Of a stretch of DNA of 64,000 nucleotides, positions 12,091 to 49,088 are shown one piece after another (position 1 is the stretch's first letter; each line of letters begins with the position of its first letter). Made by a program: the position numbers and the translations under genes. The stretch lies in the NCBI GenBank assembly GCA_002269645.1, contig NIVC01003610.1, positions 1 to 64,000 on the forward strand. Direction: 5' to 3'. The notes under the pieces are model-generated. The model did not search any database. It was not told where the DNA came from and was given only the letters and a program-made list of their open reading frames with translations. This DNA is from Macrostomum lignano. Taxonomy: Eukaryota.

Positions 12091-15000
12091 ATGAAGCTTC
12101 TGTGGGTCTCCGTGTATCTCCTGGTGCAGCTGCTTCTCTGCTTCGGCTCAGCAAGCGCGAGGCGCATCGCAGTGCTGGCTCAGACAGGCAGCGCCGACAG
12201 GTCCCTGGTGGAAGCTGCTGTGAGCAAGCTGGTCAACGGGCACTGGGTCTTCCCGCTGTTCAAGACGGAGCCTCTGAATTTCGAGTGGCTACAAGTTGCC
12301 GACGCTTTGGAAGCGGTTCAGAGAGGTGTTCAATTTTTCCACTGCAACTCTTTTATCACCTCAAAAATCAATTTATCACCACAGATTTCAAGACAAAACG
12401 AGTGCAGGAGACGGTGCGACATAAGGCTAACCGCAGTTTCGTGTTAGATTGACGCTAAAATAATTAGGCTGAGGTATTGGGTGGCCCGAGAATTACTAGT
12501 AGGCGTTACGTTACGCGGATCATTAGCATCTGTACTGTTTGGTATGACAGGGGTTGGATCTGAATCACACAGGTACAACGATACATTGTTCGGAGTCTTT
12601 CAACCAGCAAAGCTTTGTGGTTTGCTAACAAACCAGGTGAAATTGACAACTTTAACTTGTACTTTTAGCATGCAGCTCACCTACTCTCAGTGGCACGATT
12701 GTGATCGGGAACTGCGCATTTGTCTCAGATGTAATGAAACTGTCTGACTACATCAGCGTTCCTGCCATCACGCTCTCCAGTGACCTCTGCCAGCTTAGCA
12801 GCACCGGTAACTTTCTGAGCTTTGACATGTCCACTGATTTATCTCACTGGTTTTCGCTACCAGAAATCGCAAACCGAAACAAACTTTGCAGGTTTGAGCC
12901 TCGCATCAACGTCCAACGCGACAAGCTTTTTAGAAGCCGCAGCGGCAGTTTTGCAGCGGGTTGCGGCACCAGTGGCCGCTGTGCTCCACGACGAGTTCCA
13001 AGGTAAGTCCGAAGTTTCCCGATTAAAAATGAACTAGCCCATCAGATTCAGAAAGGATTTCACTCGCGCTTCAGACCACAAGCTCGTTGAGGAATTGCAG
13101 CTGGAGCTCTCCGCCAAAGGAATCGCTAGCTCAACTTTTCAGATAAATAATTCCGTCGGTAATCTGAATCTCACGTTGACAAACATGATCAAAGCTAAAA
13201 TTAGAAACATCGTAGTTCTGTGCGACCCAGGCACTGTTTTAAATATCGTTAACTTGGTAAGCTTTGAACTGCTTCAGTTTTGAGCATTCTGTTTAAAATG
13301 ATAGAAGAATTTTTCCAGGCCCAGAAAACAGGAACTCTGCAGCCGAACTACTTCTGGACAGTGATCGACACAGGAGTTCGACTTGCGTCGATCGAGGACC
13401 TGCTTCCTGCAAACGAGTCTGCAAACATTCTTGTGATCCGAGAGTCGGCCATCGACCTGAAAACGGCCTCAGCCGGTTGCACCTCACAGCTCAAGACCGT
13501 GTTTCCGGACTGCCAAACAAGCAGATACTCGGTAATAAGCCTTTATCTACAAACTTCTTGACAGATCTTAGTCGCTGTCGCTACCAAAAGACCCCTGAAC
13601 ATACCCGCAGATGCTGGAGCTGAAGGCGGTAGAGGCCGTGCTGTCGTTCGCCAGCGCTACGCATAGCTTACTAGACAGTTCCGGTCTTCCTGCCAGCAAC
13701 GTGTCGTGTCGGCCGTTGCAGCCGTGGTCGGCGGGTCCCGCACTGGCTGCGCAGCTGAAACAGGTACGGATTGAACAGGTGCTCAATTGATGATCTTCTT
13801 TGCGTTCAGATCTAATGTATTGACCTGTGCTGCACCTTATCCCCTTCTAATCTACTTTTATTTACTCTATCAACACAGCAGCAGTATCGATCATGATAGA
13901 TTACAAAATCTGTCTCAGTCTGCTCAGTCGTACCCGTTCACCTTTGTGTAGCTGCGACAGCCGCTGTCAGCTGGGAGCAGCTGGACACCCAGCGACTACT
14001 TCCTGGAGGTGCAGGCTACGTTCCACGATGAGTTCTCCGACCCGGTCCGCTTCGTCAACAGCGGCCGCTTCTTTGTAGGGAACGGCTCTCTGAGGTCAGC
14101 TTCCGCTACAGAGGTCGGAGCCTCATCTTCCCCAACACGTTTATCGACTTTAAAAATCGCACCTTAAGAGTCTGTGCGCCTGCGGTAAGCGTAGTGCGAG
14201 GTTGCGTTTGATTTCGTCTGTCGGGGGGGGGGGGGGGCTGCTCTCTTATTACTTGCATGTTGTAATTTACTCTTTGCATGCCGCCACCCCAGTCGGGTCA
14301 GTTATTTTAACCTTTTGCTGGCCATTTGACTCTGAATTCTCGGCTCTTACAGTAGTTTAGTTTATTGAAATTAAATAATGAGGCTACATGGTTTTCATAG
14401 TAGCATTCACATTTCAACTTTAGTCGCGGCCGTACATGCAGTACTCAAACGGAACGGTTGGCATTCCTGGTGCAATTTCCACCGACATCATTCACTTTCT
14501 CTCACTGCATCTGAACTATTCGTAAGTTACCTGAAATACACAAATGGGCTGAAATAGTAAGTTCCCAAGAATTTCCTGTCCACACCCTCGCAGCTACTCG
14601 CTGTTCGCTCCTGCGGACAATCAGTTCGGAGCGCCAGACCCGGCCTCGGTCTATTACACGGGCTGCATTGGCATGATTCAAAGAGGCGTAAGAAATATTC
14701 ACTTTTTAATCAGAATGTTTTGAAAAAATACTGGCTTCGAAGAGGGTACCCCCTGCTTTGCTCTGATTTGCAGGAAGCAGACATCACCATTCCCATGGCT
14801 ATTAACACATTTCGATCCAAGGTGATCGACTACTCTCAGGAGTACATGTTCTCATCGAATGCCATCTTGGTCAAGCGGCCGAATTCCGAGTCCAAGCTGT
14901 GGAATGTGTTTACGCCGCTTGCCTGGGACACGTGGCTGCTGATAGTCTGCATGCTCCTGTTGGTGCCGGGTGTCATCTTTCTGTTTGCCAGGCTCAGCCC

Positions 15001-17108
15001 GTTCTCCGCCTGGAACCTTGGTCTGCGATTCGCGTTTGCGGACGAGGTCTGGCTGAAGGAGTACATCTGGTCCGCCATAGGCAGCTTCATGCAGCAGGGC
15101 CAGGATTTCTATCCATTCGCCATGAGCCCCCGGACTGTTTTGGCGTTCTGGTGGATGCTCACTGTGATCATTTTTGGCACCTATACAGGTAAGTGTAGTG
15201 AGTGAAACGAGACTAGACTGCTTGTTGTATAGGACTCGTTATTCTGCGCAAATCTGCGCTTGCGTGCGCATTTTCGCGAACTACAGGGTTGCTGTAGTTT
15301 GTTTTTGTTGTTGTTGTTGTCGTTGTCGTCGATAGTTGCCGAAAGCTTGCAGGCGAGAAGAATTGCGATCAGTATATTTATTGAGTAATTGAGCTGAGTC
15401 AAGCTAAAGTCGCACCATGCACATTTGATATTGTACGCATAAGGGGAGAGCTAGCAGAATCACGCGGCGCAGCCGCTAACAACCGCCCCAACACACACGA
15501 TAGTAGGCGCTGCCTACAGTAAGTGTTCGAAAAGCCTTTTTGAGGCAAACGCTTTGTAGCTCGTATAGAAACATGAGCACAGTTTGTTTTTTAATGCCGC
15601 TATAAACTCCTATATCCGTCCCGATGAAGGCGATTTGACCTCAAAACTGGCCGTGACGGTTTCCAAGTACCCAATCGAAAGCCTGGAACAGCTGGTGTCC
15701 CTGCCGCAGTACAAGGCCATGGTGCCGCTCGGGACCAACATCTACTCTTCGATGATGGCCGCCACAGAGGGACCGCTGGTCAAGCTGCGGCAGATGAAAG
15801 TGCTGACGCAGTCCTTTGACACCTGCGCCATGAGTGTGAGCTACTAGCGCCAGCTGTACAAGCGCATTTGCACCAAACCACAGTTCATTACACAAGCTTA
15901 AGCTGCAATCAAACTGCTTTCAATTCTTTCAGCTGATTACCAGCACGGATCCTTACCTGGTGTGCATCTCTGACGTGAACGTGAACCTTCTGTACGCCAG
16001 CCGGTACTGCCAGTACGTGTACAATGTTTACAACTACTTCAATCCGTACTACATTGCAATCGCCTTTCCAAAGGACTCATATTATATCGATGCATTCAAC
16101 TTTTTGTAAGTAAAACTTCATTCTGACGCTTTGCGATGCTCTTTAATGCGTTTATATTAGTCTCAAAACGAAAATCTGAAACGAAAGGCAAAATGAACTC
16201 TTGGATTGGCAAATGGTGCTTTCAAGTAGCTTGTACTTATAATTTGTGGTTCACGCACATCAGTAAAACAAATTTAACTTTATTCAAATTTCAAAAATTT
16301 TATGAAAAGCAGCTGTAAGTTATTATCCAAAAACTAAACTATTAAAACTGACTAAACTTAGATGTTGCAGTAACACGTGGGATGCATTTGCATGTATTAA
16401 CAGCTAGAAATTTTTTCTGCTTGAATCGAATACTTCTAGTTAATATTTGGTATTGTCTTTAAGTGACTAATGGTACTATATTTAAATTCGAAAACTTCTT
16501 ATTGTTATTTTAGGTTCTTTTCGTAAATCTATGCGTATAATTTTTGGCCTACGAGCTACAATGTTACGACGTTAAGACGAAAGAACGTCATTAAGAAAAC
16601 GTAAAAAATTAGCAAAACAATTAGATCTCTGGGAAATAAAGCCAGGTGTCATCGTTATATTTCACCGTTATATTTTAGTTTAGCCCTAAATACCAATTAA
16701 AGGCAAATTAAAATTTCGCTAATGAAACTAAGAAACTTTTGATTCAATAATCATACAGACTTTTTAATAACTCTTTATTAATATTATCTTATCTTTTTAT
16801 AATAACTCATACTTATTATTCTGGGTACGAAAGCGTAAAGGCAGCATTTGCCTGCCAATTGCAGCATTCAGCGTGGCAAAGCTGCGGGCGTGGTCGACCT
16901 GATCAACAGCAAGTACATTCCACTGACCTCAGACTGCGGCACGGGCGCCACAGCGGCTGCCGAGGCGGCGGCCATCCCGCTGGAGGGCGTGGGAGGCGCC
17001 TACATCCTCAGCTTGGGGCTGTACGTGTGCGGCTTCCTCATCCTGCTGGTGGAGCTGCTCTGGGTGATCCTCATGAAGAAGGAAACGCTGGATTTTCCAG
17101 GATTTTGA
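12091..17108 (+). CDS. Divergent ionotropic glutamate receptor-like subunit, paralogue 1 (13 exons; apparent 1-nt deletion in exon 7)
   Basis: Exons: 12091-12325, 12669-12806, 12892-13002, 13075-13256, 13319-13531, 13611-13763, 13952-14184, 14424-14521, 14594-14687, 14774-15188, 15630-15835, 15933-16105, 16865-17108. Contains a signal peptide, ATD, S1 (ADITIPMAINTFRSKVIDYS), M1, M2 (WSAIGSFMQQG), M3 (WWMLTVIIFGTYTGDLTSKL), S2 and M4. The sum is 2495 nt, one short of a whole number of codons; exon 7 is 233 nt versus 234 nt in paralogues 2 and 3. Confidence 0.88.
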
Positions 17109-18478: not shown

Positions 18479-21400
18479 ATGCCTGATACTAAAGCTTCTG
18501 ACCGAGCTGTCGCCGCGCCGCTCTGCGCTCTCCTCGCGCTGTCCACCTGCGCAGGAGCCGTCAAACTGGCGGTGGTCTCTCAGAACGGCAGCATTGGAGA
18601 CTTGGCCGTGAGCCGAGCCATCGACCTGCTCATCAACAACTACTGGAAGCTGACGGCATTCAAGACAAACCCCATGACGCACGTCTTTGTTCAGGCCAGC
18701 GATGCTGTCGAGGCTATGCGAGCTGGTACGCGTGCGCTGGTATACTCACTGCATCGCCAGTTAATGCAGTATAATTTTGAGCCACGGAGCGAACCATTTC
18801 AACCCCAATTTTTACGGAAGGTAGCCGAATTTTAGGTTTAGGTACAAATGATTTTTTCATGTCCGTAAAATTCCAGTGTGCAACACACCCGGCCTGCACG
18901 GAGTAGTCGCCGTGGGCTCCTGCGCCTTCGTGACCGACGTTCTGGCCGTCTCCACCTCAATCAGCGTGCCGGCCGTCGCTGTCTTTCGCGATCTCTGCTT
19001 CATCAACAATACCAATCGTATTTATATTTATTAAACTCTGTCTTTATGGCATGTGCTCCATGAAACAGTCAGTTAAAGAGTTTGCATTCCTCACAACTCC
19101 GCAGCCGTGACTCTAATCTCGAACCCGGACGTCGGAACTTTCCTGGAAGCTGCTGCGACAATCGTGAGTCGGCTCGAGCAAAAGGCCATCGTTGTCTTTT
19201 ACGATAAGTATCAAGGTAAGTCTCAAAGGTGCACGTACAGCTTTGCAGTGTGAGTCTCACAAGCTCTCTAATCTGATTGCAGATCACCGTCTTCTGGAGA
19301 AGCTGCAGCAACTGCTATCGGATAAAAGCATCCCCAGCCTGACTTTCCAAATCGATGACTCAGCAAGCAACCTGACCAGCATACTGAGAAACGTCGTTTG
19401 GAAGCGTTATCGAAACACATTGGTTCTGTGCACGCCTGAAAATGTCAACGCCGTTTTACGAGAGGTGCGAATTCATAATTGTTTTTGGCACACTTTATAC
19501 CTATCCTGGCATTCACTAAGAGCATGTTAATTCATTAGAGCCTTTCTCAACACAGGCTCGGAACACGGGCACACTGAAACTCAACTACTTCTGGACAGTG
19601 ATCGACACGGGAGTTCGACTTGTGTCCATCGAGGACCTGCTCCCTACAAACGAGTCTGCAAACATTCTTGTGATCCGAGAGTCGCCCATAGACTTGAAAA
19701 CGGCCTCAGCCGGTTGCACCTCACAGCTCAAGGCCGTGTTTCCGGACTGCCAAATGAGAAAATACTCGGTAAGCCTTTATTTACACACTTCTGCAATAGA
19801 TTCTAGGCGCTGTCACCAGCCCCAGACTCTGATCATGACTGTAGATGCTGGAGATGAAGGCAGTAGAGGCCGTGCTGTCGTTCGCCAGCGCTACGCAGAG
19901 CCTACTGGACAGTTCCGGTCTTCCTGCCAGCAACGCGTCGTGTCGGCCGTTGCAGCCGTGGTCGGCGGGTCCCGCACTAGCTGCACAGCTGAAGCAGGTA
20001 CGGATCGTACCGGAGCAGGTGCTCATGGATGATGTCGTCTGTCTCAGTCTGCTCAGTCGAAACCGTTCACCTTTGTAGCTGCGACAGCCGCTGTCAGCTG
20101 GGAGCAGCTGGACACCCAGCGACTACTTTCTGGAGGTGCAGGCTACGTTCCACGACGAGTTCTCCGACCCGGTCCGGTTCGTCAACAGCGGCCGTTTCTT
20201 TGTAGGGAACGGCTCTTTAGAGGTCAGCTTCCGCTACAGAGGTCGGAGCCTCATCTTCCCCAACACGTTTATCGACTTTAAGAACAAGACTATTCGGATT
20301 TGTTCTGTTGCGGTTCGTTGATTTTTCTTGTTAGTAAACCAACTGTCGTGTCCTCTTTGTTTCGCATTTGTTTCGCATTGTTTCGCATTTTAGACGAAAC
20401 CACAAACTGAGTACTTAAACGGAACTTTTGGCGTTGCCTCGGGTATCACTGCTGATCTGGCAGCTTTCTTTTCAAAACATCTGAATTTTAGGTAATGCCG
20501 AGTTAAGAGATGTTGATGTTATTTAAGTCGAACAGCTGAATCTCAAATTTTTATTTTAATCGGAAACACTTTTTTACTTTCAGTTACACGATTTTTACGC
20601 CCCCAGACAACCAGTTTGGGGCTCCAGTCCCTGGCTCGCTCTTCTACACAGGCTGTATCGGAATGGTTCAGAAGGGAGTGAGTGCCCTTGTTTTTTCCTT
20701 TTGCGAGAAATAAATATGCTGAATAGAGACTACATTAAGCTGGAAACGGTCCGCGGACGAATTGCAGGAGGCCGACTTTGCTACGCCCTTTGCCACCACG
20801 TTGATCCGGTCGCAGGTGATTGACTATTCAGAAGAGTTTATTTTCTCCTCCAACACCATTCTGGTGAAAAGACCCATGGCCGAGTCCAAGCTGTGGAATG
20901 TGTTTGCGCCGCTCTACTGGGATTCCTGGACTCTAATTGTGAGCATGTTTTTGGTAGTGCCGCTTCTCATCTACGGGTTGGCTAGCAGCAGCTCATTCAC
21001 TGGCTGGAACCTTCAACTCAGCTTCGCCTTTGCTGACGAGGTCTGGCTGAAGGATTACATTTGGTCAGCGATTGGCAGCTTCATGCAGCAGGGTCAGGAC
21101 TTTTATCCCTTTGCCATGAGTCCTCGAGTGGTGATGGCTTTCTGGTGGATGTTGACGGTTATCATATTCGCTTCGTACACTGGTAAGTTTGGTGCGTCTG
21201 TGACTTGTCAGCAATGCATGAAACCATGCAGCAATACAGGGACTCTCATTTGCAGGTGACCTCACGGCCAAGCTGGCAGTGACTGTGGCCAAGTACCCAA
21301 TCCAGAGCTTGGACGATCTCATCTCCAAGCCGCACTACAAGGCCATGCTGCCCAGAGGCACCAACATCTACGCTGCTGTGCTGAGCGCCACAGAGGGGCC

Positions 21401-22190
21401 GCTTGCCAAGCTTAGGGATCAGTGGGAGTTAGTTGACTCCTTCGACACCTGCGCTACGAATGTAAGTCCAGCGATGATGGCTTTGGCTTGTAGTTTTGGA
21501 TTTGATGCGTCAATTCAGCGTAGCGTTTTTCAAATTTGAATAAAGAGTGTTTGCTTGCGAAAATGCGAATCCAATTTTAAAAAATAGTCTTCGTATTCCT
21601 CGAATCGCGCAGCTGGTGACCATCAAGGACCCATACCTGGTGTGCATTTCGGATCTGATTGTTAGTCTGCACTACGCCAACGAGCTGTGCGAAGACATCT
21701 ACAACGCCGACAACTACTTCAACCCGTACTTTATGGCCATGGCCTTCCCTCAGGACGCTTACTACCTGCCCGCGGTTGACTTCCTGTGAGTTGGCCTGAA
21801 TGGCTGACGGCTTGGAGCTCAGAAGTTCTGTAGTTTAGTCTCAGGTTGTCAGCGAATGCATGAACGATGGAATCTTAGGAAGAGAATTTTTGAAATGTTT
21901 TTACTCTCAAACAGTTCTGAATGGAGCAGTTTTTTTTTTCTTTTAGGATTCAGAGAAGCAAAGCGAACGGCGTCATGAGCATGATCACTGGCAAGTACAT
22001 CCCCCAGACTGCCGAGTGCGGCTCCGCCGTCAGCGCGGCTGCTGAGGCTGCGGCCATCCCCCTGGAGGGCGTTGGCGGTGCCTACATCGTCAGTCTAGCA
22101 TTCTACGTGTGCGGCGGCGTCATCCTGCTCGTGGAGCTTTTCTGGGTGTTCAAACTAAAGAACGAGCCGCTGGATTTTCCGGGTTTTTAA
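18479..22190 (+). CDS. Divergent ionotropic glutamate receptor-like subunit, paralogue 2 (13 exons, intact, 836 aa)
   Basis: Exons: 18479-18725, 18877-19017, 19105-19215, 19283-19464, 19556-19768, 19845-19997, 20079-20312, 20394-20491, 20584-20677, 20768-21182, 21256-21461, 21613-21785, 21947-22190. All introns are GT-AG and the 2511 nt total is in frame. Motifs: FATPFATTLIRSQVIDYS, WSAIGSFMQQG, ASYTGDLTAKL, M4 GVGGAYIVSL, end EPLDFPGF*. Confidence 0.92.
18868..20292. repeat. Near-identical paralogous block (paralogue 2 exons 2-7 with introns; partner 26970-28396)
   Basis: Exons and introns 2-6 align almost base for base with paralogue 3; intron 1 and intron 7 onward do not align. Confidence 0.9.
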
Positions 22191-26200: not shown

Positions 26201-29200
26201 ATGACCGCTTGGCACGCCAGCTTCCGAGCTGTCGCCGCGCCGCTCTGCGCTCTCCTCGCGCTGTCCACCTGCGCAGGAGCCGTCAAACTGGCGGTGGTCG
26301 CTCAGAACGGCAGCATTGGAGACTTGGCCGTGGGCCGAGCCATCGACCTGCTCATCAACAACTACTGGAAGCTGACGGCATTCAAGACAAACCCCATGAC
26401 GCACGTCTTTGTTCAGGCCAGCGATGCTGTCGAGGCTATGCGAACTGGTTGGTCTTATTACTAATAAGCTTTTCAGATGAGGCGTTGTGGTTCTGTCGCT
26501 CGGATAAGGAGATAACCTTGTAGCTTATCTCCTTAATCGCTCAAATCTACAAATCTAAATATTTACTGAGCGATTAAACTAGGCCATCAGAATATTGCTT
26601 ATATCATTTCCGCTTTAAAGTCAGAGACTCCTGAGGAGAGTCAGATTTCGATACACATTAGAAACTAAGATGCACTACACTACCAGTTGTTTTGCACCTG
26701 CCTCGGTTTTATATCTTCAACGCATTCTTTTTCGATTTAAAACTTAACAATACAGACAGTTTAGCTACAAGCGTAATTCAAGGCACATAAGTCTAGACAC
26801 TTCCATAAATGCCAGTTTAAAACATAATCCAAACCGCGCAAAACGATTTGTCCCACTACAAGTAGCATGTCTAGCAACGTACGAGTATGGTCAATAAATC
26901 TGTCACTGTCACCAAGCCACAGGCAAACAAAATTTGCATAGGTGCAGTTTTCTATGAAGACTGAAAAACAAATTCCAGTGTGCAACACACCCGGCCTGCA
27001 CGGAGTAGTCGCCGTGGGCTCCTGCGCCTTCGTTACCGACGTTCTGGCCGTCTCCACCTCAATCAGCGTGCCGGCCGTCGCTGTCTTTCGCGACCTCTGC
27101 TTCGTCAACAATACCAATCGTAATGATATTTATTAAACTCTGTCTTTATGACATGTGCTCCAAGAAACAGTCAGTTAAAGAGTTTGCATTCCTCACAATT
27201 TTGCAGCCGTGACTCTAATCTCGAACCCGGACGTCGGAACTTTCCTGGAAGCTGCTGCGACAATCGTGAGTCGGCTCGAGCAAAAGGCCGTCGTTGTCTT
27301 TTACGATAAGTATCAAGGTAAGTCACAAAGGTGCACAGCTTTGCAGTGTGAGTCTCACAAGCTCTCTAATCTGATTGCAGATCACCGTCTTCTGGAGAAG
27401 CTGCAGCAACTGCTATCGGATAAAAGTATCCCCAGCCTGACTTTCCAAATCGATGACTCAGCAAGCAACCTGACCAGCATACTGAGAAACGTCGTTTGGA
27501 AGCGTTATCGAAACACATTGGTTCTGTGCACGCCTGAAAATGTCGACGCCGTTTTACGAGAGGTGCGAATTCAGGATTGTTTTTGGCACACTTTATACCT
27601 ATCCTGGCATTCACTAAGAGCATGCTAATTCATTAGAGCCTTTCTCAACACAGGCTCGGAACACGGGCACACTGAAACTCAACTACTTCTGGACAGTGAT
27701 CGACACGGGAGTTCGACTTGTGTCCATCGAGGACCTGCTCCCTACAAACGAGTCTGCAAACATTCTTGTGATCCGAGAGTCGCCCATAGACTTGAAAACG
27801 GCCTCAGCCGGTTGCACCTCACAGCTCAAGGCCGTGTTTTCGGACTGCCAAATGAGCAAATACTCGGTAAGCTTTTATTTACAAACTTCTTCTGCAATAG
27901 ATTCTAGGCGCTGTCACCAGCCCCAGACTCTGATCATGACTGTACCAGTAGATGCTGGAGATGAAGGCAGTAGAGGCCGTGCTGTCGTTCGCCAGCGCTA
28001 CGCAGAGCCTACTGGACAGTTCCGGTCTTCCAGTCAGCAACGCGTCGTGTCGGCCGTTGCAGCCATGGTTGGCGGGTCCCGCACTGGCTGCGCAGCTGAA
28101 GCAGGTACGGATCGTACCGGAACAGGTGCTCATGGATGATGTCGTCTGTCTCAGTCTGCTCAGTCGAAACCGTTCAACTTTGTAGCAGCGACAGCCGCTG
28201 TCAGCTGGGAGCAGCTGGACACCCAGCGACTACTTCCTGGAGGTTCAGGCTACGTTCCACGACGAGTTCTCCGACCCGGTCCGGTTCGTCAACAGCGGCC
28301 GCTTCTTTGTAGGGAACGGCTCTTTAGAGATCAGCTTTCGCTACAGAGGTCGGAGCCTCATCTTCCCCAACACATTTATTGACTTTAAGAACAAGAGTCT
28401 GCGGATTTGCGCTGTCGCGGTAGGTGGAAGAGCAAAGAAATGAAAAATTTCGGTTATCTCTTTAGTCCTAAAATAGTTTTTCATTTTCAGTCGAAGCCCT
28501 ACACCATGTACTCCGGCGGGTTAGTGGGCAATGCTTCTGGCATTACAGCCGATTTGGCTGCGTTCTTTTCGAAGCATCTCAACTTCACGTACGATTGATT
28601 TACTTTAAATAAATGCTGGGGCTTTTGTCTAAACATCATATAATTTAGTTAAAGAGTTAAACATTAATTTTTCAGCTACTCGATCTTTACGCCACCGGAC
28701 AACCAGTTTGGCGCCCCGTCTCCTGGCTCCCCGTACTTTACAGGCTGCATCGGCATGGTGCAAAAAGGCGTGAGTAGCCCAGACTAACCAATTATTTCGA
28801 CAAGCTTGTCATTCTGAAATTGAACTCTTCCTCAAATCACATTTAGGAGGCCGACTTCGCCACACCATTCGCCATCACGACAATCCGATCGAAGGTGATC
28901 GACTATTCAGAAGAATTCCTTTTCTCCTCAAACACCATCCTGGTGAAAAGGCCCATGGCTGAGTCCAAGCTGTGGAATGTGTTTGCGCCGCTCTCCTGGG
29001 ACTCCTGGACTCTCATTGTGGCCATGTTCCTGGCCGTACCGCTCCTTATCTACGGGTTAGCTCGGCTGAGTCCATTCACTGGCTGGAACTTGAACTTGCC
29101 CTTTGCTTTTGCTGACGAGGTCTGGCTCAAAGAGTACATCTGGTCGACAGTGGGCAGCTTCCTGCAGCAGGGCCAGGACTTTTATCCGTTTGCCATGAGC

Positions 29201-30549
29201 CCTCGGACAGTATTGGCTTTCTGGTGGATGCTCACCGTTATCATTTTTGCTACCTACACTGGTGAGTCGGCCTTCTGGTCACTGTCTCTACACTTTTGAG
29301 ATGTTTTATAGACCTTCAAAATCGGAGTTTGACAATTTTTACAAGCAAGTGTGTTTTATGGCGTAGATTAACTGCTCGAATCAAAACTCAGGCAAAATAT
29401 AATAGAACTTGCTTAGCTATTTTTTTATTGTTTCTGATTGCTTGTAACTTGCGTTTTTTTGCGATCATAAGAACCGCTCTTCGGCACTGCTCAGGGGACC
29501 TCACGGCCAAGCTGGCAGTGACTGTGGCCAAGTACCCAATCCAGAGCTTGGACGATCTCATCTCCAAGCCGCACTACAAGGCCATGCTGCCCAGAGGCAC
29601 CAACATCTACGCTGCTGTGCTGAGCGCCACAGAGGGGCCGCTGCTGCAACTGCGCAAGCAATGGATGGTGGTTGACTCCTTCGACACCTGCGCTACCAAT
29701 GTAATTACATATAACTGATGAGGATTAAGAGTTAGACTTAGGCAAGGAAGGTACTTGTACTCAATTTTTTCTGATCTACATTTGCAAAATATACCAACCC
29801 AACTTCAGTTGGTGAGGATGCCGGACCCATACCTGGTGTGCATATCGGACCTCAGCATCAGTTTGTTCTACGCTAACGAGCTCTGCAGTGAGATCTACAA
29901 CGCAGAGAACTACTTTAACACATATTATTTGGCTATGGCCTTCCCACAGGATGCATACTACCTGCCTGCCTTTGACTTCCTGTGAGTGGGAACGAGGGAT
30001 CAGTAATGTGTGGATGCGAGTTGTGAAAAAGTATCCCCATGCACTCGAAAATTACTGCAATTATTCTTTTACTCTAAATTAATAGGTCTCTTGCAAACTT
30101 TAAACCTCAAACCTCGAATTTTAAATCATTATTTGTATCATTTAAAAATTCGAACGAACTTTATGTACCATAAAATTGACAGTTTTGCCTGAAACAGAAG
30201 TTCTGCCTTCTAGTGAGACTGCATCTGCAAGTGCTTCGTACTGTAAATTCTACAATAATTGGTATTCGTTTTTTGCCAAGTCTCCTTTCAAAATATTCCT
30301 CTCAGGATTCAGAGAAGCAAAGCGAACGGCGTCATGAGCATGATCACTGGCAAGTACATCCCACAGACTGCCGAGTGCGGCTCCGCCGTCAGCGCAGCTG
30401 CTGAGGCTGCGGCCATCCCCCTGGAGGGCGTTGGTGGTGCCTACATCGTCAGTCTGGGCCTCTACGTGTGCGGCGGCCTCATCCTGTTGATTGAGCTGCT
30501 CTGGGTGTTGCTGTTGAAGAAGGAGTCGCTGGATTTTCCGGGTTTTTGA
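26201..30549 (+). CDS. Divergent ionotropic glutamate receptor-like subunit, paralogue 3 (13 exons, intact, 836 aa)
   Basis: Exons: 26201-26447, 26979-27119, 27207-27317, 27381-27562, 27654-27866, 27952-28104, 28186-28419, 28491-28588, 28676-28769, 28847-29261, 29495-29700, 29809-29981, 30306-30549. Exon lengths equal those of paralogue 2. Motifs: WSTVGSFLQQG, ATYTGDLTAKL, end ESLDFPGF*; AATAAA at 30582. Confidence 0.92.
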
Positions 30550-31843: not shown

Positions 31844-32696
31844 TATATGATGCTTAAAACGTTATTTAACTTAAAAAGTAAAAGCCACATGATCTAGGAT
31901 AATCTTTTTTTACCTTTTTTATAAATGTACTACAAGTATTTTGGCGAAAGTCGTGGCGCCGTCGCCCCTTTTTTTGCGTCTCGCCTGCGTGAGCTTAAAA
32001 TATTTTCTACTTAAAGAGTTTTTCCAATTTCTAGCATCCCTGTTTGCATTCGATGCGCCAAATGTAGCTTTAATTTGAGCTGTTGCTTTTACGGGGTTGT
32101 TTCAGGAAATACCCTTTCGTACCAATAGTGACCTTGGATGTTACTACTAAAAGAAAAAAACCAGCGTTCTTTAGGTTTGATGAAGGAAAAGTCCCGCCTG
32201 GACAATGAGAAACCCGATCGCTGAAGCGAACCTCATTAAATAAGATATCGAAGGTGAAGCCAGGCAATTTGAAGGTTGCCAAGCCCTGCGGTAGATTCTA
32301 TTTCATAGAGATGCGGAACTCAGCAGTCCTGAGTCCCTTCTACCGCGGGTGTTTTGCCACCGGACCAACAGCACCGCGACTAAATAGCTGTAACTGGAAA
32401 CCCAATCGACTCAAGCTTGTTATCCGAAAAAGGTGAGATCTTTCTGGCTGCAAAGACAGGCATCAGGATGTAGTACAGAACACATCCCATCTTATGCTGC
32501 CTTGAAAATCGCCTGATCTCGTTAGAACCTTCCCATTTTTACTTAATGAGACTGCAGTTGAATAACCAGCCTCTGATCGATCGGAAACATCTGATACCAA
32601 AACCAGCTCCAGTTCAGCCAGATCTCAATAAATAGCTCCAGTGTCCCACTCCGGCAGCGGCTCGCGGCTCTCACACACGCGATCTTTAAGTCAGTC

Positions 32697-35600
32697 ATGT
32701 GGCACGAGCTGCGAACGCTGCTGCTCCTGCTGGCCCTGCACGCCTGCAGCGGGTCATCCGTGCGCCTGGCTGTTGTAAGCGAAGCCGGAAGTCTCGCGGA
32801 CAGTTCGATCATCACCACAGCGGTGGACAAGCTGGTCAACGGAAACTGGAGGTATCCGGCATTCAAGACCAGTCCGATGTCGCTGGAGCTGCTGCCGACT
32901 GCGGACTCAGTGGAGGCTGCGCAGAGAGGTAAAAACAGCTTGCGATACAAATGTATTGTAGAATTCTAAGAAAGAAAATTATGTACTCGTACTTTGGTGA
33001 CAATCAATAGCTGATTAGGTTCAACGACGACTTGCTTGCTTACCCGGAAAATCTCTTCTGAAACTTCAGTGTGTCGATCGACAGGTCTCAACGGCTTGGT
33101 CGTCGTCGGCTCTTGTCAGTTCGTCTCGGATGTGCTCAAAATCTCTGGCTCCCTACAATTACCGACAGTCGCAGTTCTCAGAGGCCTTTGTCGGCTACCC
33201 AGTGTGCCAGGTAAAACCCTTATTACCACAACCTATCTACTGACGCACACTTGCTTACATCACAGACAAGAATGAATCGCATGTCTTTACAGACTCAGCG
33301 ATCGTATCGAGTCCACTGGCGACTGACTTCTTGAGGGCGACCGCAGAAGCAATGGACCGAGTCTCCGCTAATCTGGTCGCTGTCCTTCACGACAGACAAC
33401 AGGGTGCGCATGTCTTCCTCAAGATTACTCGTAACGCCCCATTTGTAAGTTGACAGCAATGCCTTCCTCAACCATGGTGGCCAACACTCGTCATTGCAGA
33501 CCACTTGCTGCTTGAGCAGCTTCAGCAACTGCTCTCGGAGAAGAGAATCGCCAGCATGATGTTTCAGTTCGACGAGTCGGCCACCAATTTGACACAAATC
33601 CTGCAAAACAGCGTCAAGGCTCAGATTCGATACTGTGTGGTCGTCTGCGAGCCCGACAAGATCCCACTCGTCTTCGAGCAGGTGAGCTCAGGTACAAATT
33701 CTTTCGCACAATCGATTAGGGCTTAATATCATTTGGTTGTCATTCCAGGCTCGGAACACAGCCACACTGCAGATCAACTACTTCTGGACCGTGATTGACA
33801 CAGGAATTTCGCCAAGAACTATCGAGACTCTGATCCCCGCGAATGGGTCTGCGAACATCCTCTTGATCCGTGAGTCGGCAGTTCTTCTCAAAGAAATGGA
33901 CTGCTCTGTAGATCTCGGAGTCGTGTATCCGGACTGCCAGTTCAGCAAGCGTTCGGTGAGGAACTCGTTCCCTGCAAACTTCTTCTGCGATGGAGCTTAG
34001 GCGCTGGCGATCTATCTGCAGTAGACCCTGAATATCCCTCAGATGCTGGAGCTGAAGGCGTTGGAGGCCGTGCTGTCATTCGCCAGAGCTACACAGAGCC
34101 TGCTGGACAGCTCCGACCTCGGCCTGACCGCCAGCAACGCGTCGTGTCGGCCGCTGCAGCCGTGGTCGGCGGGTCCCGCAGTGGCTGCGCAGCTGAAGCA
34201 GGTTGGAGTTCAGTTGCCTGTCTGACTCAGATTCTTAGCGACATGTGCGATTTGTGGTTGAGTTTGCTTTACACCGGCATACTTAATAGCTGAATCAGAG
34301 AACAGAAAGCAAAGCTTACTGGAACCACGGCTGTAATTAATGCTTAACCCCATATTTCCTGGCATGCCTCATAGCAGCGGCTCAGCCCAGCCAACGGAAG
34401 TGCGGGGCACCGGAGCGACTACTTCCTGGAGATGCTGGGCCTGCTTAGCAACCCGGAGGCAGTCGCGGAACTAGTGCCAAGCGGCCGGTTTATCGTCGAG
34501 AACGGCAGCCTTGTAGTGACCTTCGAGTACAAGGAGCGCGAGCTGCTGTTTCCCAACACCTTCGTGGACTTCAAGGGAGCTCGACTGCGGGTCTGCGCGC
34601 CGCCGGTAAGGGCTTTCTTTTCAGCGAAATATGTAACTTTTGCCTCGTTTCTCGAATTTACTTGCAATCAAATATCTCTTTTGGTGCAGATCTTAAATAA
34701 TAATAATTGATTACCCATGCCCCAATGGTCAAGCGACAGCTCAGCCGCAGCTATTGCGCGGCGCCTCTGAATGCTGCGTACGGCTGTTCAGTCCAAGGAC
34801 TCTCAATCGCTACTCACCCTCAATTATCCCAGCTAATGTTGGTACCCATTTTTCAGCTTTGTGAACTGAAGCAATGCAGAGTTATGTTTTATTGTTCATG
34901 CTCAAAGACAAATTGTTTCGAGCGGGTCGAGAATCGAATTCCCGACCTTTCAGTCATGAGTCAGACGCACTCCCAATGGGCTACAACCCCCCTGAAGACG
35001 CTGAGGTTGTCTGATGAAGCTTAATTTTGTTTTAAATTGTGCTTGGAGTAATGAAGTAGTGTTCGATTCATACAGTTGTGCAAACAGTAAAACGCTGGAA
35101 ATGACTTAATTCATATAATGAAGCAAAACTGGCATGATTTAATTATCTTGTCTGCATGCTAAGCTGATACTCTGCATGAACCAATCCAGTTTCCACCTTA
35201 CACGGTCTACGAGAACTACACATTTGGCAGAGCTTCTGGACACTCGGTCGAAATGCTTAGCTACTTTACCAGGCACCTCAATTTTACGTAAGCCATATTA
35301 TTTTTCATCAGTCATCTCTACATGAAAATATGCTTCATTTTTTATGCCTCAATTTGAAGGTACGACCTGTTCTCTCCGCCGGATAACCAGTTCGGGGCAC
35401 CTGTGGAGGGCTCACCCTACTTTACTGGCTGCATCGGCATGCTGCAGAAAAGAGTGAGCGCAGTGAACATACGAGCGTATGTTCACTTCCAAATGAATTC
35501 AACACACTGAATGACTGAATCTGTTTCTGTCTTTCAGCAAGCGGATTTCGCGATGCTGTTCGCTACTACTACTTTCCGCCATAAAGTAGTCGACTACTCG

Positions 35601-37654
35601 GATGAGTACCAGTTCTCGTCCAACACCATCCTAGTGAAAATGCCTCCACCAGAGTCCAAGCTGTGGAATGTGTTCACGCCGCTCTCCTGGGACTCTTGGC
35701 TGCTCATTATTGCCATGTTCGTCATTGTTCCAGTCGTTATCTTCATTTTCGCCAAGCTCAGTCCCTTTAGCGCCTGGACTTTGGGCTTGCCTTATGCGTT
35801 TTCTGACGAAGTCTGGCTAAAGGAATACGTCTGGTCGGTCATTGGCAGCTTCTTGCAGCAGGGCCAGGACTTTTACCCGTTCTCGATGAGTCCTCGAACT
35901 GTCATGGCGTTCTGGTGGATGCTCACAGTAGTCATTTTTGGAGCATATACAGGTGGTTAAGCTAGGTTGTTTTATCAAATCTAATGCTTATGACTGCAGT
36001 TGATCAAATGTTAGTGCGTTTTCTATCCCTTTCCTTCAGGGGACCTCACGGCCAAGCTTGCTGTGACGGTGGCCAAGTACCCGATCGAGAGCTTGGAGGA
36101 TCTGATCGCCAGGCCGCACTACAAGGCCATGGTTGCCCAGGGCACCAACATCTACGGCTCAATCATGCTGGCGACGGAAGGTCCCTTGACTATGCTACGC
36201 AAACAGATGGAGCTTGTTGACACAATGGCCACCTGCGCCGAGACTGTGAGTTTGAGTGTCATGGTTTTAGATTGATTTACATTCGATGAAGTCAACAAAG
36301 CCTGAGGCTCTCAGTCAGGTCTGAAAAAGCACTTCACCGAACTTACCCTCAGCTCCTCAAGCCGGACGCGAGCCCGTACCTGGTGTGCGTCTCAGACCAG
36401 AGCAGCAATTCTTATTACGCCAGCGCATTCTGCAAGCAGGTTTACCAAGCCAAAAATTTCTTCAACTTTTACTACTTGGCTATGACGTTTCCACAGGATG
36501 TCTACTACCTTCCAGCATTTGACTTTCTGTAAGTTTCATATTCTTCATTATCCTTTAATGTTCTTGAATATAGCTACCTTCATTAGCTGTCATATATAGC
36601 TGTCATTAGGTTTTATGACATTTGGTTATATTTTATTTATTTTATACTTTGGTTATATTTTATTACACGTATAGTGCCAGGTGAAAAAAAAACTAACTGA
36701 GCTTTGCAGCCGCAATTTTACGATTTTTTCGGCTTCAAATCCCCACCAGCGACAACCAAACTTCAAAACCCAGCACGACATTCCACAACCAAACCTCGAA
36801 CAACAGAATAACACTCCACAACCAAACCTCTAACAACAGAATAACACTCCACAACCAAACCTCGAACAACAGAATAACACTCCACAACCAAACCTCGAAC
36901 AACAGAATAACACTCCACAACCAAACCTCGAACAACAGAATAACACTCCACAACCAAACCTCGAACAACAGAATAACACTCCACAACCAAACCTCGAACA
37001 ACAGAATAACACTCCACAACCAAACCTCGAACAACAGAATAACACTCCACAACCAAACCTCGAACAACAGAATAACACTCCACAACCAAACCTCGAACAA
37101 CAGAATAACACTCCACAACCAAACCTCGAACAACAGAATAACACTCCACAACCAAACCTCGAACAACAGAATAACACTCCACAACCAAACCTCGAACAAC
37201 AGAATAACACTCCACAACCAAACCTCGAACAACAGAATAACACTCCACAACCAAACCTCGAACCACAGAACGATACTATATTCTACAGCCGAACATTGAA
37301 CCACCACAGAACTAAGTGCCACAACCGAACCTTGAACCACCACAGAACTAAGTGCCACAACCGAACCTCGAACCAGAACATGTAAAGTCACAGCAAAAAC
37401 TCGAACCCTACAGACTGCAGCGCGGCAAGGAGAGCGGCTTCGTCGATGTGGTGACTCGCAAGTTCATTCCTTCGACAAGCGACTGCAACGTCAACACGGC
37501 CGCCGCTGAGGCCGCAGCCATCCCACTGGAGGGTGTGGGTGGCGCCTACATCGTCAGTCTGTCGCTCTACCTGTGCGGCGGTGTCATCCTGCTGATCGAG
37601 CTGTTCTGGGTGGTCAGGCTGCAGAGGGACCCGCTCGATATGCCCGGATACTGA
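32697..37654 (+). CDS. Divergent ionotropic glutamate receptor-like subunit, paralogue 4 (13 exons, intact, 830 aa)
   Basis: Exons: 32697-32928, 33070-33210, 33293-33403, 33500-33681, 33749-33955, 34043-34201, 34375-34605, 35190-35287, 35360-35453, 35538-35952, 36040-36245, 36353-36528, 37414-37654. The 2493 nt total is in frame. Motifs: WSVIGSFLQQG, GAYTGDLTAKL, end DPLDMPGY*. Confidence 0.92.
34708..34992 (-). mobile_element. tRNA-headed SINE copy (intron 7 of paralogue 4)
   Basis: The minus strand has A-box-like TAGCCCATTGG and B-box-like GAATTCGATTC. The body is shared with the copies at 40727 and 50138 (GACAGCTCAGCCGCAGCTATTGCG...GCTGTTCAGT.CAAGGACT). Confidence 0.7.
36780..37265. repeat. 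33-bp minisatellite, ~14.5 copies (intron 12 of paralogue 4)
   Basis: Unit AACAGAATAACACTCCACAACCAAACCTCGAAC, followed by two related ~35-bp variants up to ~37370. Confidence 0.95.
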
Positions 37655-47014: not shown

Positions 47015-49088
47015 AACCTTTCATTTTTACTTAATGAGACTGCAGTTGAATAACCAGCCTCTGATCGATCGGAAACATCTGATACCAAAACCGGATTCAG
47101 TTCAGTAAGATCTCAATAAATAGCTCCAGTGTCCCACTCCGGCAGCGGCTCGCGGCTCTCACACACGCGATCTTTAAGTCAGTCATGTGGCACGAGCTGC
47201 GAACGCTGCTGCTCCTGCTGGCCCTGCACGCCTGCAGCGGGTCATCCGTGCGCCTGGCTGTTGTAAGCGAAGCCGGAAGTCTCGCGGACAGTTCGATCAT
47301 CACCACAGCGGTGGACAAGCTGGTCAACGGAAACTGGAGGTATCCGGCATTCAAGACCAGTCCGATGTCGCTGGAGCTGCTGCCGACTGCGGACTCAGTG
47401 GAGGCTGCGCAGAGAGGTAAAAACAGCTTGAGATACAAATTTATTGTAGAATTCTAAGAAAGAAAATTATGTACTTTGGTGACAATCAATAGCTGATTAG
47501 GTTCAACGACGACTTGCTTGCTTACCCGGAAAATCTCTTCTGAAACTTCAGTGTGTCGATCGACAGGTCTCAACGGCTTGGTCGTCGTCGGCTCTTGTCA
47601 GTTCGTCTCGGATGTGCTCAAAATCTCTGGCTCCCTACAATTACCGACAGTCGCAGTTCTCAGAGGCCTTTGTCGGCTACCCAGTGTGCCAGGTAAAACC
47701 CTTATTACCACAACCTATCTACTGACGCACACTTGCTTACATCACAGACAAGAATGAATCGCATATCTTTACAGACTCAGCGATCGTGTCGAGTCCACTG
47801 GCGACCGACTTCTTGAGGGCGACCGCAGAAGCAATGGACCGAGTCTCCGCTAATCTGGTCGCTGTCCTTCACGACAGACAACAGGGTGCGCATGGCTTCC
47901 TCAAGATACTCTCGCCTGTAAGTTGACAGCAATGCCTTCCTCAACCATGGTGGCTAACACTCGTCATTGCAGACCACTTGCTGCTTGAGCAGCTTCAGCA
48001 ACTGCTCTCGGAGAAGAGAATCGCCAGCGTGATGTTTCAGTTCGACGAATGGCCACCAATTTGACCAAATCCTGCAAAACAGCGTCAAGGCTCAGATTCG
48101 ATACTGTGTGGTCGTCTGCGAGCCCGACAAGATCCCACTCGTCTTCGAGCAGGTGAGCTCAGGTACAAATTCTTTTGCACAATCGATTCGGCTTAATATT
48201 ATTTGGTTGTCATTCCAGGCTCGGAACACAGCCACACTGCAGATCAACTACTTCTGGACTGTGATTGACACAGGAATTTCGCCAAGAACTATCGAGACTC
48301 TGATCCCCGCGAATGAGTCTGCGAACATCCTCTTGATCCGTGAGTCGACAGTTCTTCTCAAAGAAATGGACTGCTCTGTAGATCTCGGAGTCGTGTATCC
48401 GGACTGCCAGTTCAGCAAGCGTTCGGTGAGGAACTCGTTCCCTGCAAACTTCTTCTGCGATGGAGCTTAGGCGCTGGCGATCTATCTGCAGTAGACCCTG
48501 AACATCCCTCAGATGCTGGAGCTGAAGGCGTTGGAGGCCGTGCTGTCATTCGCCAGAGCTACACAGAGCCTGCTGGACAGCTCCGACCTCGGCCTGACCG
48601 CCAGCAACGCGTCGTGTCGGCCGCTGCAGCCGTGGTCGGCGGGTCCCGCAGTGGCTGCGCAGCTGAAGCAGGTTGGAGTTCAGTTGCCTGTCTGACTCAG
48701 ATTCTTAGCGACATGTGCAATTTGTGGTTGAGTTTGCTTTACACCGGCATACTTAATAGCTGAATCAGAGAACAGAAAGCAAAGCTTAATTGCCCTAATA
48801 GAAGCACGGCTTCTTGTAATTAATGCTTAACCCCATATTTCCTGGCATGCCTCATAGCAGCGGCTCAGCCCAGCCAACGGAAGTGCGGGGCACCGGAGCG
48901 ACTACTTCCTGGAGATGCTGGGCCTGCTCAGCAACCCGGACGCAGTCGCGGAACTCGTGCCAAGCGGCCGGTTTATCGTCGAGAACGGCAGCCTTGTAGT
49001 GACCTTCGAGTACAAGGAGCGCGAGCTGCTGTTTCCCAACACCTTCGTGGACTTCAAGGGAGCTCGACTGCGGGTCTGCGCGCCGCCG
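47015..49088. repeat. ~2.1-kb near-identical duplicate of 32527-34605 (upstream region plus exons 1-7 of paralogue 4)
   Basis: Upstream DNA, exons and introns align almost base for base. Identity ends at the exon 7 donor (GCGCCGCCG|GTAAGG versus GCGCCGCCG|GTTAGT). Confidence 0.92.

Follow-up and report, generated by a model that had tools for sequence, protein, structure and literature searches.

Five tandem iGluR-like genes of the flatworm Macrostomum lignano with an altered M3 gate motif

The M3 segment SYTANLAAF is the element by which iGluRs are recognised and filtered, and in human receptors it is nearly intolerant to change. An earlier note on the DNA described here had called it the most conserved iGluR motif, which is borne out by a family-wide survey in which positions 2, 4 and 5 rank highest (PMC6307864); in the same work, Ramos-Vicente et al. 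dropped sequences with fewer than four conserved motif residues. In GluA2 the motif runs from S615 to F623 with the lurcher site at position 8 (PMC5430913), the gate residues are T617, A621, T625 and M629, and A618 is the hinge (PMC9068512). M3 takes part in gating within a pre-M1/M3/pre-M4 triad (PMC7141592). The further premise of the note, that substitutions in the motif alter gating as in lurcher, also stands, both for position 8 (PMC5430913) and for positions 5, 7 and 9 of NMDA receptors, where single changes (GluN1 N650K/I, A652T and F654C and GluN2A F652V) alter gating and cause disease, with a calculated open probability that goes down, not up (PMC10973091). Among divergent iGluR-derived proteins, the IRs have a short N-terminus without an ATD, except for IR8a and IR25a (PMC2924276), and Trichoplax AKDF1 illustrates that a natural non-canonical iGluR of a non-model animal can function (PMC12226733, PMC13648236).

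Analysis of a 64,000-nucleotide stretch of the Macrostomum lignano genome (the window) revealed five tandem 13-exon genes, g1 to g5, all on the plus strand and encoding proteins of 830-836 aa (Table 1). The C-terminal 177 aa of g3 are 99.4% identical to the M. lignano UniRef entry A0A1I8JJU8, and residues 364-817 of g5 are 99.8% identical to A0A1I8FU98 from the same species.

Table 1. Features of the gene cluster, in window coordinates; a slash marks the position of the intron that splits the motif.
Feature	Coordinates	Strand	Description
g1	12091..17108	+	13-exon iGluR-like gene, 831 aa (conceptual), GTYTG/DLTSKL; from tblastn exon map, junctions and model
g2	18479..22190	+	Intact 13-exon iGluR-like gene, 836 aa, ASYTG/DLTAKL; copy located by the earlier note
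g3	26201..30549	+	Intact 13-exon paralogue, 836 aa, ATYTG/DLTAKL
g4	32697..37654	+	Intact 13-exon paralogue, 830 aa, GAYTG/DLTAKL
g5	47185..51452	+	13-exon paralogue, 830 aa (conceptual), GAYTG/DLTAKL
g2 exons 1-7 (ATD) tract	18509..20310	+	94-100% identity to g3, introns included; stops at exon 7/intron 7
g4 exons 1-7 (ATD) tract	32575..34600	+	96-100% identity to g5 (~47063-49088), introns included; stops at exon 7/intron 7
g1 exon 7, 1-bp deletion vs g2 and g3	14091..14092	+	Frameshift or assembly indel
g5 exon 4, two 1-bp deletions vs g4	48050..48066	+	Net -2; frameshift or assembly indels
g1 M3 motif	15179..15646	+	Position-1 to K9 codon; exon 10 end 15188, exon 11 start 15630
g2 M3 motif	21173..21272	+	Position-1 to K9 codon; exon 10 end 21182, exon 11 start 21256
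g3 M3 motif	29252..29511	+	Position-1 to K9 codon; exon 10 end 29261, exon 11 start 29495
g4 M3 motif	35943..36056	+	Position-1 to K9 codon; exon 10 end 35952, exon 11 start 36040
g5 M3 motif	50083..50521	+	Position-1 to K9 codon; exon 10 end 50092, exon 11 start 50505
g1 motif intron	donor 15189, acceptor 15629	+	441 nt, phase 1, GTYT before donor
g2 motif intron	donor 21183, acceptor 21255	+	73 nt, phase 1, ASYT before donor
g3 motif intron	donor 29262, acceptor 29494	+	233 nt, phase 1, ATYT before donor
g4 motif intron	donor 35953, acceptor 36039	+	87 nt, phase 1, GAYT before donor
g5 motif intron	donor 50093, acceptor 50504	+	412 nt, phase 1, GAYT before donor

A six-frame scan of the whole window found exactly five copies of DLT[AS]KL, all on the plus strand, with their D codons at 15632, 21258, 29497, 36042 and 50507, and the upstream exon of each gene ends in xYT plus a G followed by a GT donor. 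The claim that all five genes read xYTGDLT[A/S]K, split in each by a phase-1 intron, was reproduced exactly, including the five strings and the g2 coordinates 21168-21290; the junctions, GT-AG and phase 1 throughout, coincide in position across the five genes. The substitutions A4G, N5D, A7T and F9K named in the same claim are correct in the HMMER alignment to GluA1, which pairs SYTGDLTAKL with SYTANLAAFL without a gap. Canonical SYTANLAAF is absent from the cluster: Y2, T3 and L6 are common to all five genes, A8 is found in g2-g5 with Ser at this lurcher site in g1, and position 1 varies (S in g2 alone, T in g1/g3, A in g4/g5). Immediately downstream (KLAVTVAK), Ala stands in place of both T625 and M629, the gate residues that follow in GluA2.

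That the true mRNA joins another exon or splice site giving ANLAAF is conceivable solely because an intron splits the motif; no support for it was found, and we give it almost no credence. The exon that would restore ANLAAF, a prospect raised with the original claim, is missing from the six frames of the window, which contain neither NL[AT][AS][FK] nor a contiguous YT[GA][DN]L. The uniformity of the five junctions also speaks against such splicing, as do independent UniProt models of g5 and seven paralogues, which continue into YTGDLTA[KH]L without a break. We rejected an alternative acceptor within exon 11, use of which would drop DLTAKLA; it scores lower and would cost half of M3.

The five genes encode complete iGluRs, with an ATD, an LBD and a pore. 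The S1-M1-pore loop-M3-S2-M4 core (PF10613 plus PF00060) is present with E values of 3e-22 and 2.5e-12, above the curated cut-offs, and the g2 protein matches Lig_chan at 79 bits, Lig_chan-Glu_bd at 47 bits and ANF_receptor at 27.6 bits. The last of these, the ATD (PF01094; ~395 aa in the cluster proteins), exceeds its cut-off of 25.4 bits in g2, and the same region of g4 scores 19.8 bits, under the cut-off. In a PDB sequence search the nearest solved relatives of the cluster proteins were GluA1, GluD1 and GluA2/4, with GluA1 the best match of g2 in an end-to-end HMMER alignment (E 1.7e-36). The AF2 model of the g5-equivalent protein, with pLDDT >90 across the LBD and TMD, has an M3 helix (residues 239-268) that is continuous through G261-K266, and its top Foldseek matches are AMPA-receptor LBD-TMD chains (E 1e-26, target-normalised TM-score at most 0.78).

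The AKDF iGluRs GluA1, GluA2 and GluD1, the best matches in both sequence and fold, share with the cluster the ATD-S1-M1-pore loop-M3-S2-M4 architecture, the S1 Arg (R485 of GluA2, kept in all five genes) and an AMPA/kainate-like pore loop with its Q/R site. This loop, GSF[LM]QQGQD, is invariant in the cluster, and GSFMQQGQD faces GAFMQQGCD at equal spacing to M3. In contrast, identity is only ~20-25%, the M3 motif retains three to five of its nine residues (hinge Ala to Gly, N to D, gate Ala to Thr and F to K, followed by T625 and M629 to Ala), the S2 'GST' motif (S654/T655 of GluA2) reads GTN, and the cytoplasmic tail is very short. GluA2 E705 pairs with S711 and the next residue is an invariant Asp, with a one-residue ambiguity in the alignment; on one choice of alignment at that residue, the S2 Asp is probably retained in the cluster. 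The cluster proteins, which keep the full ATD-LBD-pore layout, the pore loop, the S1 Arg, GTN and probably the S2 Asp, most likely function as subunits of ligand-gated cation channels.

Comparison of the five genes with one another indicated constraint. Over M1-M3, dN/dS is 0.07-0.15 at a saturated dS of 0.7-1.9 for every gene pair, those with g1 and g5 included, and the motif codons themselves differ synonymously (GAT/GAC, TTG/CTC, ACC/ACG, AAA/AAG and GGC/GGT/GGG); on these two grounds we conclude that the motif is under strong purifying selection. The copies are paralogous and represent a single inherited state, which excludes five independent events. It is highly improbable that they are decaying or non-conducting copies, either pseudogenes or receptors whose pore is no longer used, with the motif a product of relaxed drift. 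Such decay would fit the frameshifts of g1 and g5 in the assembly and the public models of g3 and g5, which are fragments or chimeras. However, we rejected pseudogenes as a general explanation on dN/dS, the encoded motif stays the same in spite of synonymous changes between the copies, and the pore loop does not vary. The frameshifts are possibly assembly errors, given that an adjoining single-exon claudin-like gene has a 1-bp deletion within a C run, suggesting indels in the assembly.

Relatives were gathered by an exhaustive HMMER scan with a profile built from the exon-10 translations of all five genes, which gave 1220 matches, the best 150 of which were used. Among the 136 complete motifs in these best 150, 85 are exactly xYTANLAAF, 12 have G4, 16 have D/E5, 16 have T7, five have H9 and one, the g5 equivalent, has K9. 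A word-indexed protein search returned only 3 and 8 relatives; as it passed over proteins in which YTGDLTA is present, the lack of other taxa among its matches does not show that they are without the motif. Full-text queries with YTGDL, SYTGDL, YTGNL and YSGNL found no receptor literature, and a literature search found no paper on Macrostomum iGluRs.

In a neighbour-joining (NJ) tree of 161 columns, with the motif columns left out and labelled Epsilon, NMDA and Lambda references absent, the K9 and H9 sequences together form a clade (bootstrap 89) nested within a Macrostomum G4 clade (97) and a Platyhelminthes clade (80); K9 by itself reaches only 57. The closest named outgroups are spiralian 'glutamate receptor-like/delta-1-like' proteins. 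Together, the tree and the motif table place the genes as paralogues in what appears to be a flatworm-specific branch of AMPA/kainate/delta-like iGluRs and indicate that the motif was built stepwise inside this flatworm-only branch. The uncharacterised iGluR-like proteins of Cichlidogyrus, Spirometra/Sparganum, Paragonimus and Opisthorchis, and BOX15_Mlig020788 of M. lignano, fall in the same flatworm clade (bootstrap 80) and carry D/E5 and often T7 and M6 (YQADMTAFL, YQAELVAFL, WQADMTAFM, YTADMIGYL), differing from the cluster in Ala4 and in position 9, which is aromatic. D/E5 is common to the cluster and parasitic flatworms, and D5 is also frequent in uncharacterised flatworm and nemertean relatives. 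Within the best 150 of the 1220 matches, G4 combined with H or K at position 9 is restricted to Macrostomum, with H in the sister paralogues and K in this cluster only. P0032, a close relative from M. lignano, combines an identical pore loop with the near-canonical motif YTANLTAFL.

In the order that these data indicate, N5 changed to D/E in the flatworm stem, A7 to T early, A4 to G within the Macrostomum-only expansion, F9 to H across most of that expansion, and H9 to K in this cluster alone. The motif, which the earlier note had described as a rewrite in the five genes, is on the motif table and the NJ tree not isolated but the end point of this flatworm series. The related question of whether the motif is common in characterised clades divides by position: G4 is the norm in arthropod IR93a orthologues and T7, frequent in the flatworm clade, also occurs in otherwise canonical receptors, whereas H/K9 is found in Macrostomum only, among the best 150 matches.

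Like the protostome IRs, exemplified by IR93a (YSGNL[IV]AFL), the cluster is a lineage-specific tandem expansion of divergent, iGluR-derived proteins with Gly4 and plausible heteromeric use. Unlike most IRs the cluster proteins have an ATD, and unlike them IR93a keeps N5 and F9; the IR93a-like sequence P0052 lies outside the spiralian/flatworm group, though the NJ tree is shallow and weak at this point. We rejected IR membership on the basis of the ATD and this placement.

Each of the close pairs g2/g3 and g4/g5 joins a near-identical ATD half to an LBD/TMD half that is much older and diverged. This pattern points to a family that may vary its ligand specificity while its assembly domains stay compatible. 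Another reading, which we consider possible though doubtful, is that the proteins are obligate heteromeric 'tuning' subunits similar to insect IRs, which would supply ligand specificity and conduct only with a partner whose gate is canonical or nearly so. Such a role would be consistent with a tandem array in which the LBD exons have diverged and the ATD halves are nearly identical within the two pairs, with the sharing of G4 with IR93a, a receptor that functions alongside the co-receptor IR25a (PMC5052030), and with the existence of P0032 with its matching pore loop and near-canonical motif. On the other hand, unlike tuning IRs, the cluster proteins retain a full ATD (PMC2924276) and, apparently, the core ligand-binding residues, and in the NJ tree they stand apart from the IR93a-like sequence.

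Mapping of the substitutions onto GluA2 suggests how they could act. With T3 kept, the A7 to T change would add a second Thr ring at the constriction, the upper gate rings of T625 and M629 would shrink to Ala, and G4 would take the place of the A618 hinge, where M3 kinks during opening. An acidic and a basic residue had been said to enter the M3 bundle crossing; D5 and K9 are indeed present in M3 by alignment but not in the permeation path, since helical periodicity would put them on the face opposite the pore-lining T617/A621/T625. One helical turn apart, at i/i+4, they would most simply form any salt bridge within a helix, on a face that in NMDA and AMPA receptors packs on pre-M1 and, from the adjacent subunit, on pre-M4. 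Paired within the helix, the two charges could neutralise each other and re-tune the coupling of the LBD to the gate; one would expect the energetics of gating to be altered and the gate itself to be unbroken. We regard this account as a whole, with flatworm-specific subunits, a selected motif assembled stepwise and retuned gating, as reasonably probable, though well short of assured.

A stronger version, in which G4, D5, T7 and K9 confer a lurcher-like leak, or gating or modulation by protons or Ca2+ through a D-K (or D-H) pair, seems unlikely to us. It draws on the coincidence of positions 4, 7 and 8 with hinge, gate and lurcher site (PMC9068512, PMC5430913), the reduction of both upper gate residues to Ala, the His9 of the sister paralogues, titratable near neutral pH, and the greater proton sensitivity of NMDA-receptor A652T, N648S and F652V (positions 7, 5 and 9; PMC10973091). 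Against it, the lurcher alanine is intact in four of the five genes, unlike in lurcher-type open iGluRs, helical periodicity assigns D5 and K9 to the face away from the pore, and the lowered calculated open probability of NMDA receptors altered at positions 5, 7 and 9 (PMC10973091) argues against presuming a lurcher-like leak. Although lurcher GluD2 and the NMDA disease variants alter the same nine residues, they are single deleterious changes on a canonical background, in contrast to the co-adapted, selected set of the cluster. Naturally leaky iGluRs such as Trichoplax AKDF1 are known (PMC12226733), but that leak arises in the LBD, where it is attributed to loss of an Asp (D705) that the cluster appears to retain, and not in M3. 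Rather improbable, in our judgement, is the specific proposal that D5-K9, or D5-H9 in the sisters, forms an electrostatic switch at the M3/pre-M1/pre-M4 interface which, together with the Gly hinge and trimmed gate, would define a tonically open or proton-tuned class in which H to K fixed one state.

Under the favoured account of stepwise retuning, the clade would offer a selected natural series, YTANLTAF to YTGDLTAH to YTGDLTAK, on an unchanged AMPA-like pore loop. This series could serve as a mutational path for studying what gating owes to the hinge residue, to the second gate ring and to the M3 face directed away from the pore, and for testing whether a buried Asp is compensated by a basic residue at a distance of one helical turn. 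Should gating prove ordinary, the series would be of value only for the cataloguing of a divergent subfamily; since single NMDA-receptor changes at positions 5, 7 and 9 cause disease, ordinary function should not be assumed.

Flatworms, absent from two major surveys of the family (PMC6307864, PMC2924276), would also hold an unsampled iGluR radiation that motif-based filters would discard in part; g1 itself falls under the threshold of four conserved motif residues used by Ramos-Vicente et al. As a separate observation, matches that combine the pore loop TSFTPQGGG with the motif FTANLAAFL form a distinct group, which may be IR25a-like.

Analysis of five tandem iGluR-like genes (g1 to g5, in 5' to 3' order) revealed that the canonical gate motif SYTANLAAF is rewritten in each. 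A six-frame scan of the window found five copies of DLT[AS]KL, all on the plus strand, each lying 73-441 nt downstream of an exon that ends in xYT and a G followed by GT. In g2, the junction within 20900-21600 reads TTC GCT TCG TAC ACT G/gtaagt...ttgcag/GT GAC CTC ACG GCC AAG CTG, translated across a 73-nt intron as F-A-S-Y-T-G-D-L-T-A-K-L. The five spliced strings (GTYTGDLTSKL, ASYTGDLTAKL, ATYTGDLTAKL and GAYTGDLTAKL twice) match exactly those in the earlier note, as does its claim of a phase-1 intron splitting each motif, since every one of these introns is GT-AG and phase 1 and interrupts the same codon; its sequence observation is correct. Neither contiguous YT[GA][DN]L nor NL[AT][AS][FK] occurred in any frame of the window, so no hidden exon can restore ANLAAF there, and this alternative was rejected on the six-frame scan. 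SYTGDLTAKL aligns without gaps on SYTANLAAFL of GluA1 (viifaSYTGDLTAKLavtvakyPIqSlddL on liisSYTANLAAFLtvermvsPIeSaedL).

Mapping by tblastn with the exons of g2, then junction refinement, gave five colinear sets of 13 exons encoding products of 830-836 aa. These contain Lig_chan, Lig_chan-Glu_bd and ANF_receptor Pfam domains, and their closest solved relatives are GluA1 (E 1.7e-36), GluD1 and GluA2/4, with the GluA1 alignment spanning the amino-terminal part (ATD) to M4 and gapless across M3. GSF[LM]QQGQD, the pore-loop sequence, resembles GAFMQQGCD of GluA2 and lies at the same distance from M3. Arginine is retained in S1, the S2 'GST' motif is GTN, and Ser aligns to the E705 position with an invariant Asp at the next residue. 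AlphaFold2 modelled the public protein matching g5 exons 7-13 with pLDDT above 90 across the ligand-binding (LBD) and transmembrane (TMD) parts and an M3 helix unbroken through the motif; the top structural matches of the model are AMPA-receptor LBD-TMD chains.

Positions of genes, duplicated tracts and neighbouring features
Feature	Position	Strand	Remarks
g1	12091-17108	+	tblastn, refined junctions
g2	18479-22190	+	tblastn, refined junctions
g3	26201-30549	+	tblastn, refined junctions
g4	32697-37654	+	tblastn, refined junctions
g5	47185-51452	+	tblastn, refined junctions
g2/g3 ATD tract	18509-20310 vs 26231-28419		ends at exon 7/intron 7
g4/g5 ATD tract	32575-34600 vs 47063-49088		ends at exon 7/intron 7
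Fibrinogen C-terminal domain gene	41646-42041, possibly up to 44227	-	Pfam E 1.7e-20
Claudin-superfamily gene, single exon	53646-54423	-	2.2 kb downstream of g5, tail to tail
DIS3-like exoribonuclease gene, 5' part	60829-63998	+	OB_Dis3 and cold-shock domains at 63483-63998
Minisatellite arrays	10319-10597, 23039-23677, 24575-25100, 31436-31844, 36778-37270, 39229-39914, 53090-53606

The reading frames of g2, g3 and g4 are intact. As assembled, frames are broken by a 1-bp deletion in g1 exon 7 (14091-14092) relative to g2 and g3, and by two 1-bp deletions in g5 exon 4 (48050-48066) relative to g4. These breaks could reflect recent pseudogenisation or assembly indel errors. In the claudin-like gene, a CCC run near 54170 seems to have lost 1 bp, splitting the Pfam match (after repair, a full-length Claudin_2 match, 66.7 bits), which makes assembly indels a live alternative to pseudogenisation. 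Among public M. lignano proteins, a 177-aa UniRef fragment matches g3 residues 660-836 at 99.4% identity, and A0A1I8FU98 matches g5 residues 364-817 at 99.8%. The latter is a chimeric prediction (48858-54200) that starts inside g5 exon 7, exits exon 13 early and reads on downstream, taking in the antisense strand of the claudin-like gene; despite this, it independently reads YGAYTGDLTAKLAV over the exon 10/11 junction.

An exhaustive HMMER scan of 1.84 billion representative proteins, with a profile from the five exon-10 translations, gave 1220 matches, and M3 motifs were taken from the best 150. Numbering SYTANLAAF from 1 to 9, the 136 complete motifs included 85 with exact xYTANLAAF, 12 with G4, 16 with D/E5, 16 with T7, five with H9 and one, the g5 equivalent, with K9; within this best 150, D5 was confined to uncharacterised proteins, and K9 and H9 to Macrostomum. 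Twelve matches had E below 1e-30, and of the ten looked up, nine came from M. lignano and one was an ENA sequence. Another M. lignano fragment carries YTGDLTSAL, and a close relative with the same pore loop, also an M. lignano fragment, retains YTANLTAFL. Among the matches listed, the closest named relatives outside Macrostomum come from other flatworms (Cichlidogyrus, YQADMTAFL; Spirometra/Sparganum, YQAELVAFL; Paragonimus, WQADMTAFM; Opisthorchis, WQAFMTATM). Nemerteans rank next (YTADLAAYL, YTADLVAFL, YTGNLISFL), ahead of 'glutamate receptor-like/delta-1-like' proteins from annelids and molluscs, which carry TYTANLAA[FY]L. In spiders, a scorpion, Limulus and a barnacle, proteins that NCBI names IR93a carry YSGNL[IV]AFL; IR93a is a characterised Ionotropic Receptor (IR) working with IR25a (PMC5052030), so that G4 is the usual residue in one characterised IR. 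T7 also occurs in otherwise canonical receptors. Thus, where the earlier note asked if the motif is common in characterised clades, single positions are found there and the combination is not.

A neighbour-joining tree of 161 columns, with motif columns left out, placed the window genes and the g5 equivalent (bootstrap 57) within a group adding YTGD[LM]TAH paralogues (89), a 20-tip G4 clade made up of Macrostomum alone (97) and a 33-tip clade of Platyhelminthes (80), with spiralian relatives outermost. Read on this tree, D/E5 appears old and flatworm-wide and T7 early, G4 appears specific to Macrostomum within the flatworms with H9 later, and K9 seems limited to the window cluster. Motif codons vary synonymously among paralogues (GAT/GAC, TTG/CTC, ACC/ACG, AAA/AAG, GGC/GGT/GGG), its amino-acid sequence is preserved between old duplicates, g1 and g5 included, and dN/dS over M1-M3 between paralogues is 0.07-0.15 (dS 0.7-1.9). 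The gate change is genuine and under selection, and it belongs to a Macrostomum-specific tip within a flatworm iGluR clade.

Over the ATD halves (exons 1-7 with introns), g2 and g3 share 94-100% identity and g4 and g5 share 96-100%, with dS of 0.02-0.05 within pairs. From intron 7 on, pair identity drops to 64-91% and dS is 0.3-1.3 (LBD/TMD halves). The g1 gene shares sequence with g2 and g3 over exons 5-7 only (~90%). This pattern points to recent domain-level gene conversion or recombination that joined the assembly domain to LBD/channel halves that are older and have diverged. Ligand-contact neighbourhoods vary among paralogues around a fixed Arg, GTN and probable core Asp, which fits a family diversifying ligand specificity.

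In GluA2 numbering the motif spans S615-F623, and position 8 is the lurcher site (PMC5430913); the GluA2 gate comprises T617, A621, T625 and M629, and opening kinks M3 at hinge A618 (PMC9068512). Mapped on GluA2, the flatworm proteins retain gate residue T3 and have Gly at hinge A4 and Thr at gate residue A7; lurcher residue A8 is retained (Ser in g1). Both upper gate residues, T625 and M629, are Ala in all five genes (KLAVTV[AS][KE]; 21273-21293 in g2), and four of the five have a second Lys at the V630-equivalent position. This upper-gate change (KLAVTVAK) was missing from the earlier note. D5 and K9 are spaced i/i+4 and offset by two residues from the pore-lining positions, hence on the same non-pore M3 face one helical turn apart, a predicted geometry for an intrahelical ion pair. 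The most economical reading is a co-adapted gate, in which the hinge would gain flexibility, the constriction would shift down to two Thr rings and the old Asp would be charge-compensated first by His and later by Lys. Such a gate might leak, be tuned by pH or merely differ in kinetics.

In NMDA receptors, the upper M3 region forms a gating triad with pre-M1 and the neighbour's pre-M4 (PMC7141592). Substitutions at positions 5, 7 and 9 (GluN1 N650K/I, A652T and F654C; GluN2A N648S and F652V) alter potency, Asn650, Ala652, Asn648 and Phe652 variants lower open probability in one assay caveated by its authors, and A652T, N648S and F652V raise proton sensitivity (PMC10973091). The mechanisms suggested in the earlier note are partly at odds with the effects of these equivalent substitutions.

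Divergent M3 motifs as such are already known from IRs and the Lambda and Phi groups; the present series is convenient natural material for gate biophysics, and the flatworm clade marks a gap in iGluR phylogenies. Ramos-Vicente et al. found positions 2, 4 and 5 best conserved and discarded sequences with <4 conserved motif residues (PMC6307864); flatworms are absent from the text of that study, and likewise from that of Croset et al. (PMC2924276).

Finally, the claudin-like protein shows weak likeness to the calcium-channel gamma-1 subunit (PDB E 0.012). TARPs, the AMPA-receptor auxiliary proteins, are members of the calcium-channel gamma-subunit family; the position of this gene beside g5 may be coincidence. 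Between g4 and g5, which are 9.5 kb apart, the fibrinogen-domain gene is encoded on the opposite strand. The intergenic spacers and intron 12 of g4 contain many near-perfect minisatellite arrays, with 7-29 copies of units of 14-44 bp and 88-100% matches; in the DIS3-like gene, coding ORFs are separated by minisatellites with periods of 34 bp (61446-62131) and 21 bp (62787-63482).
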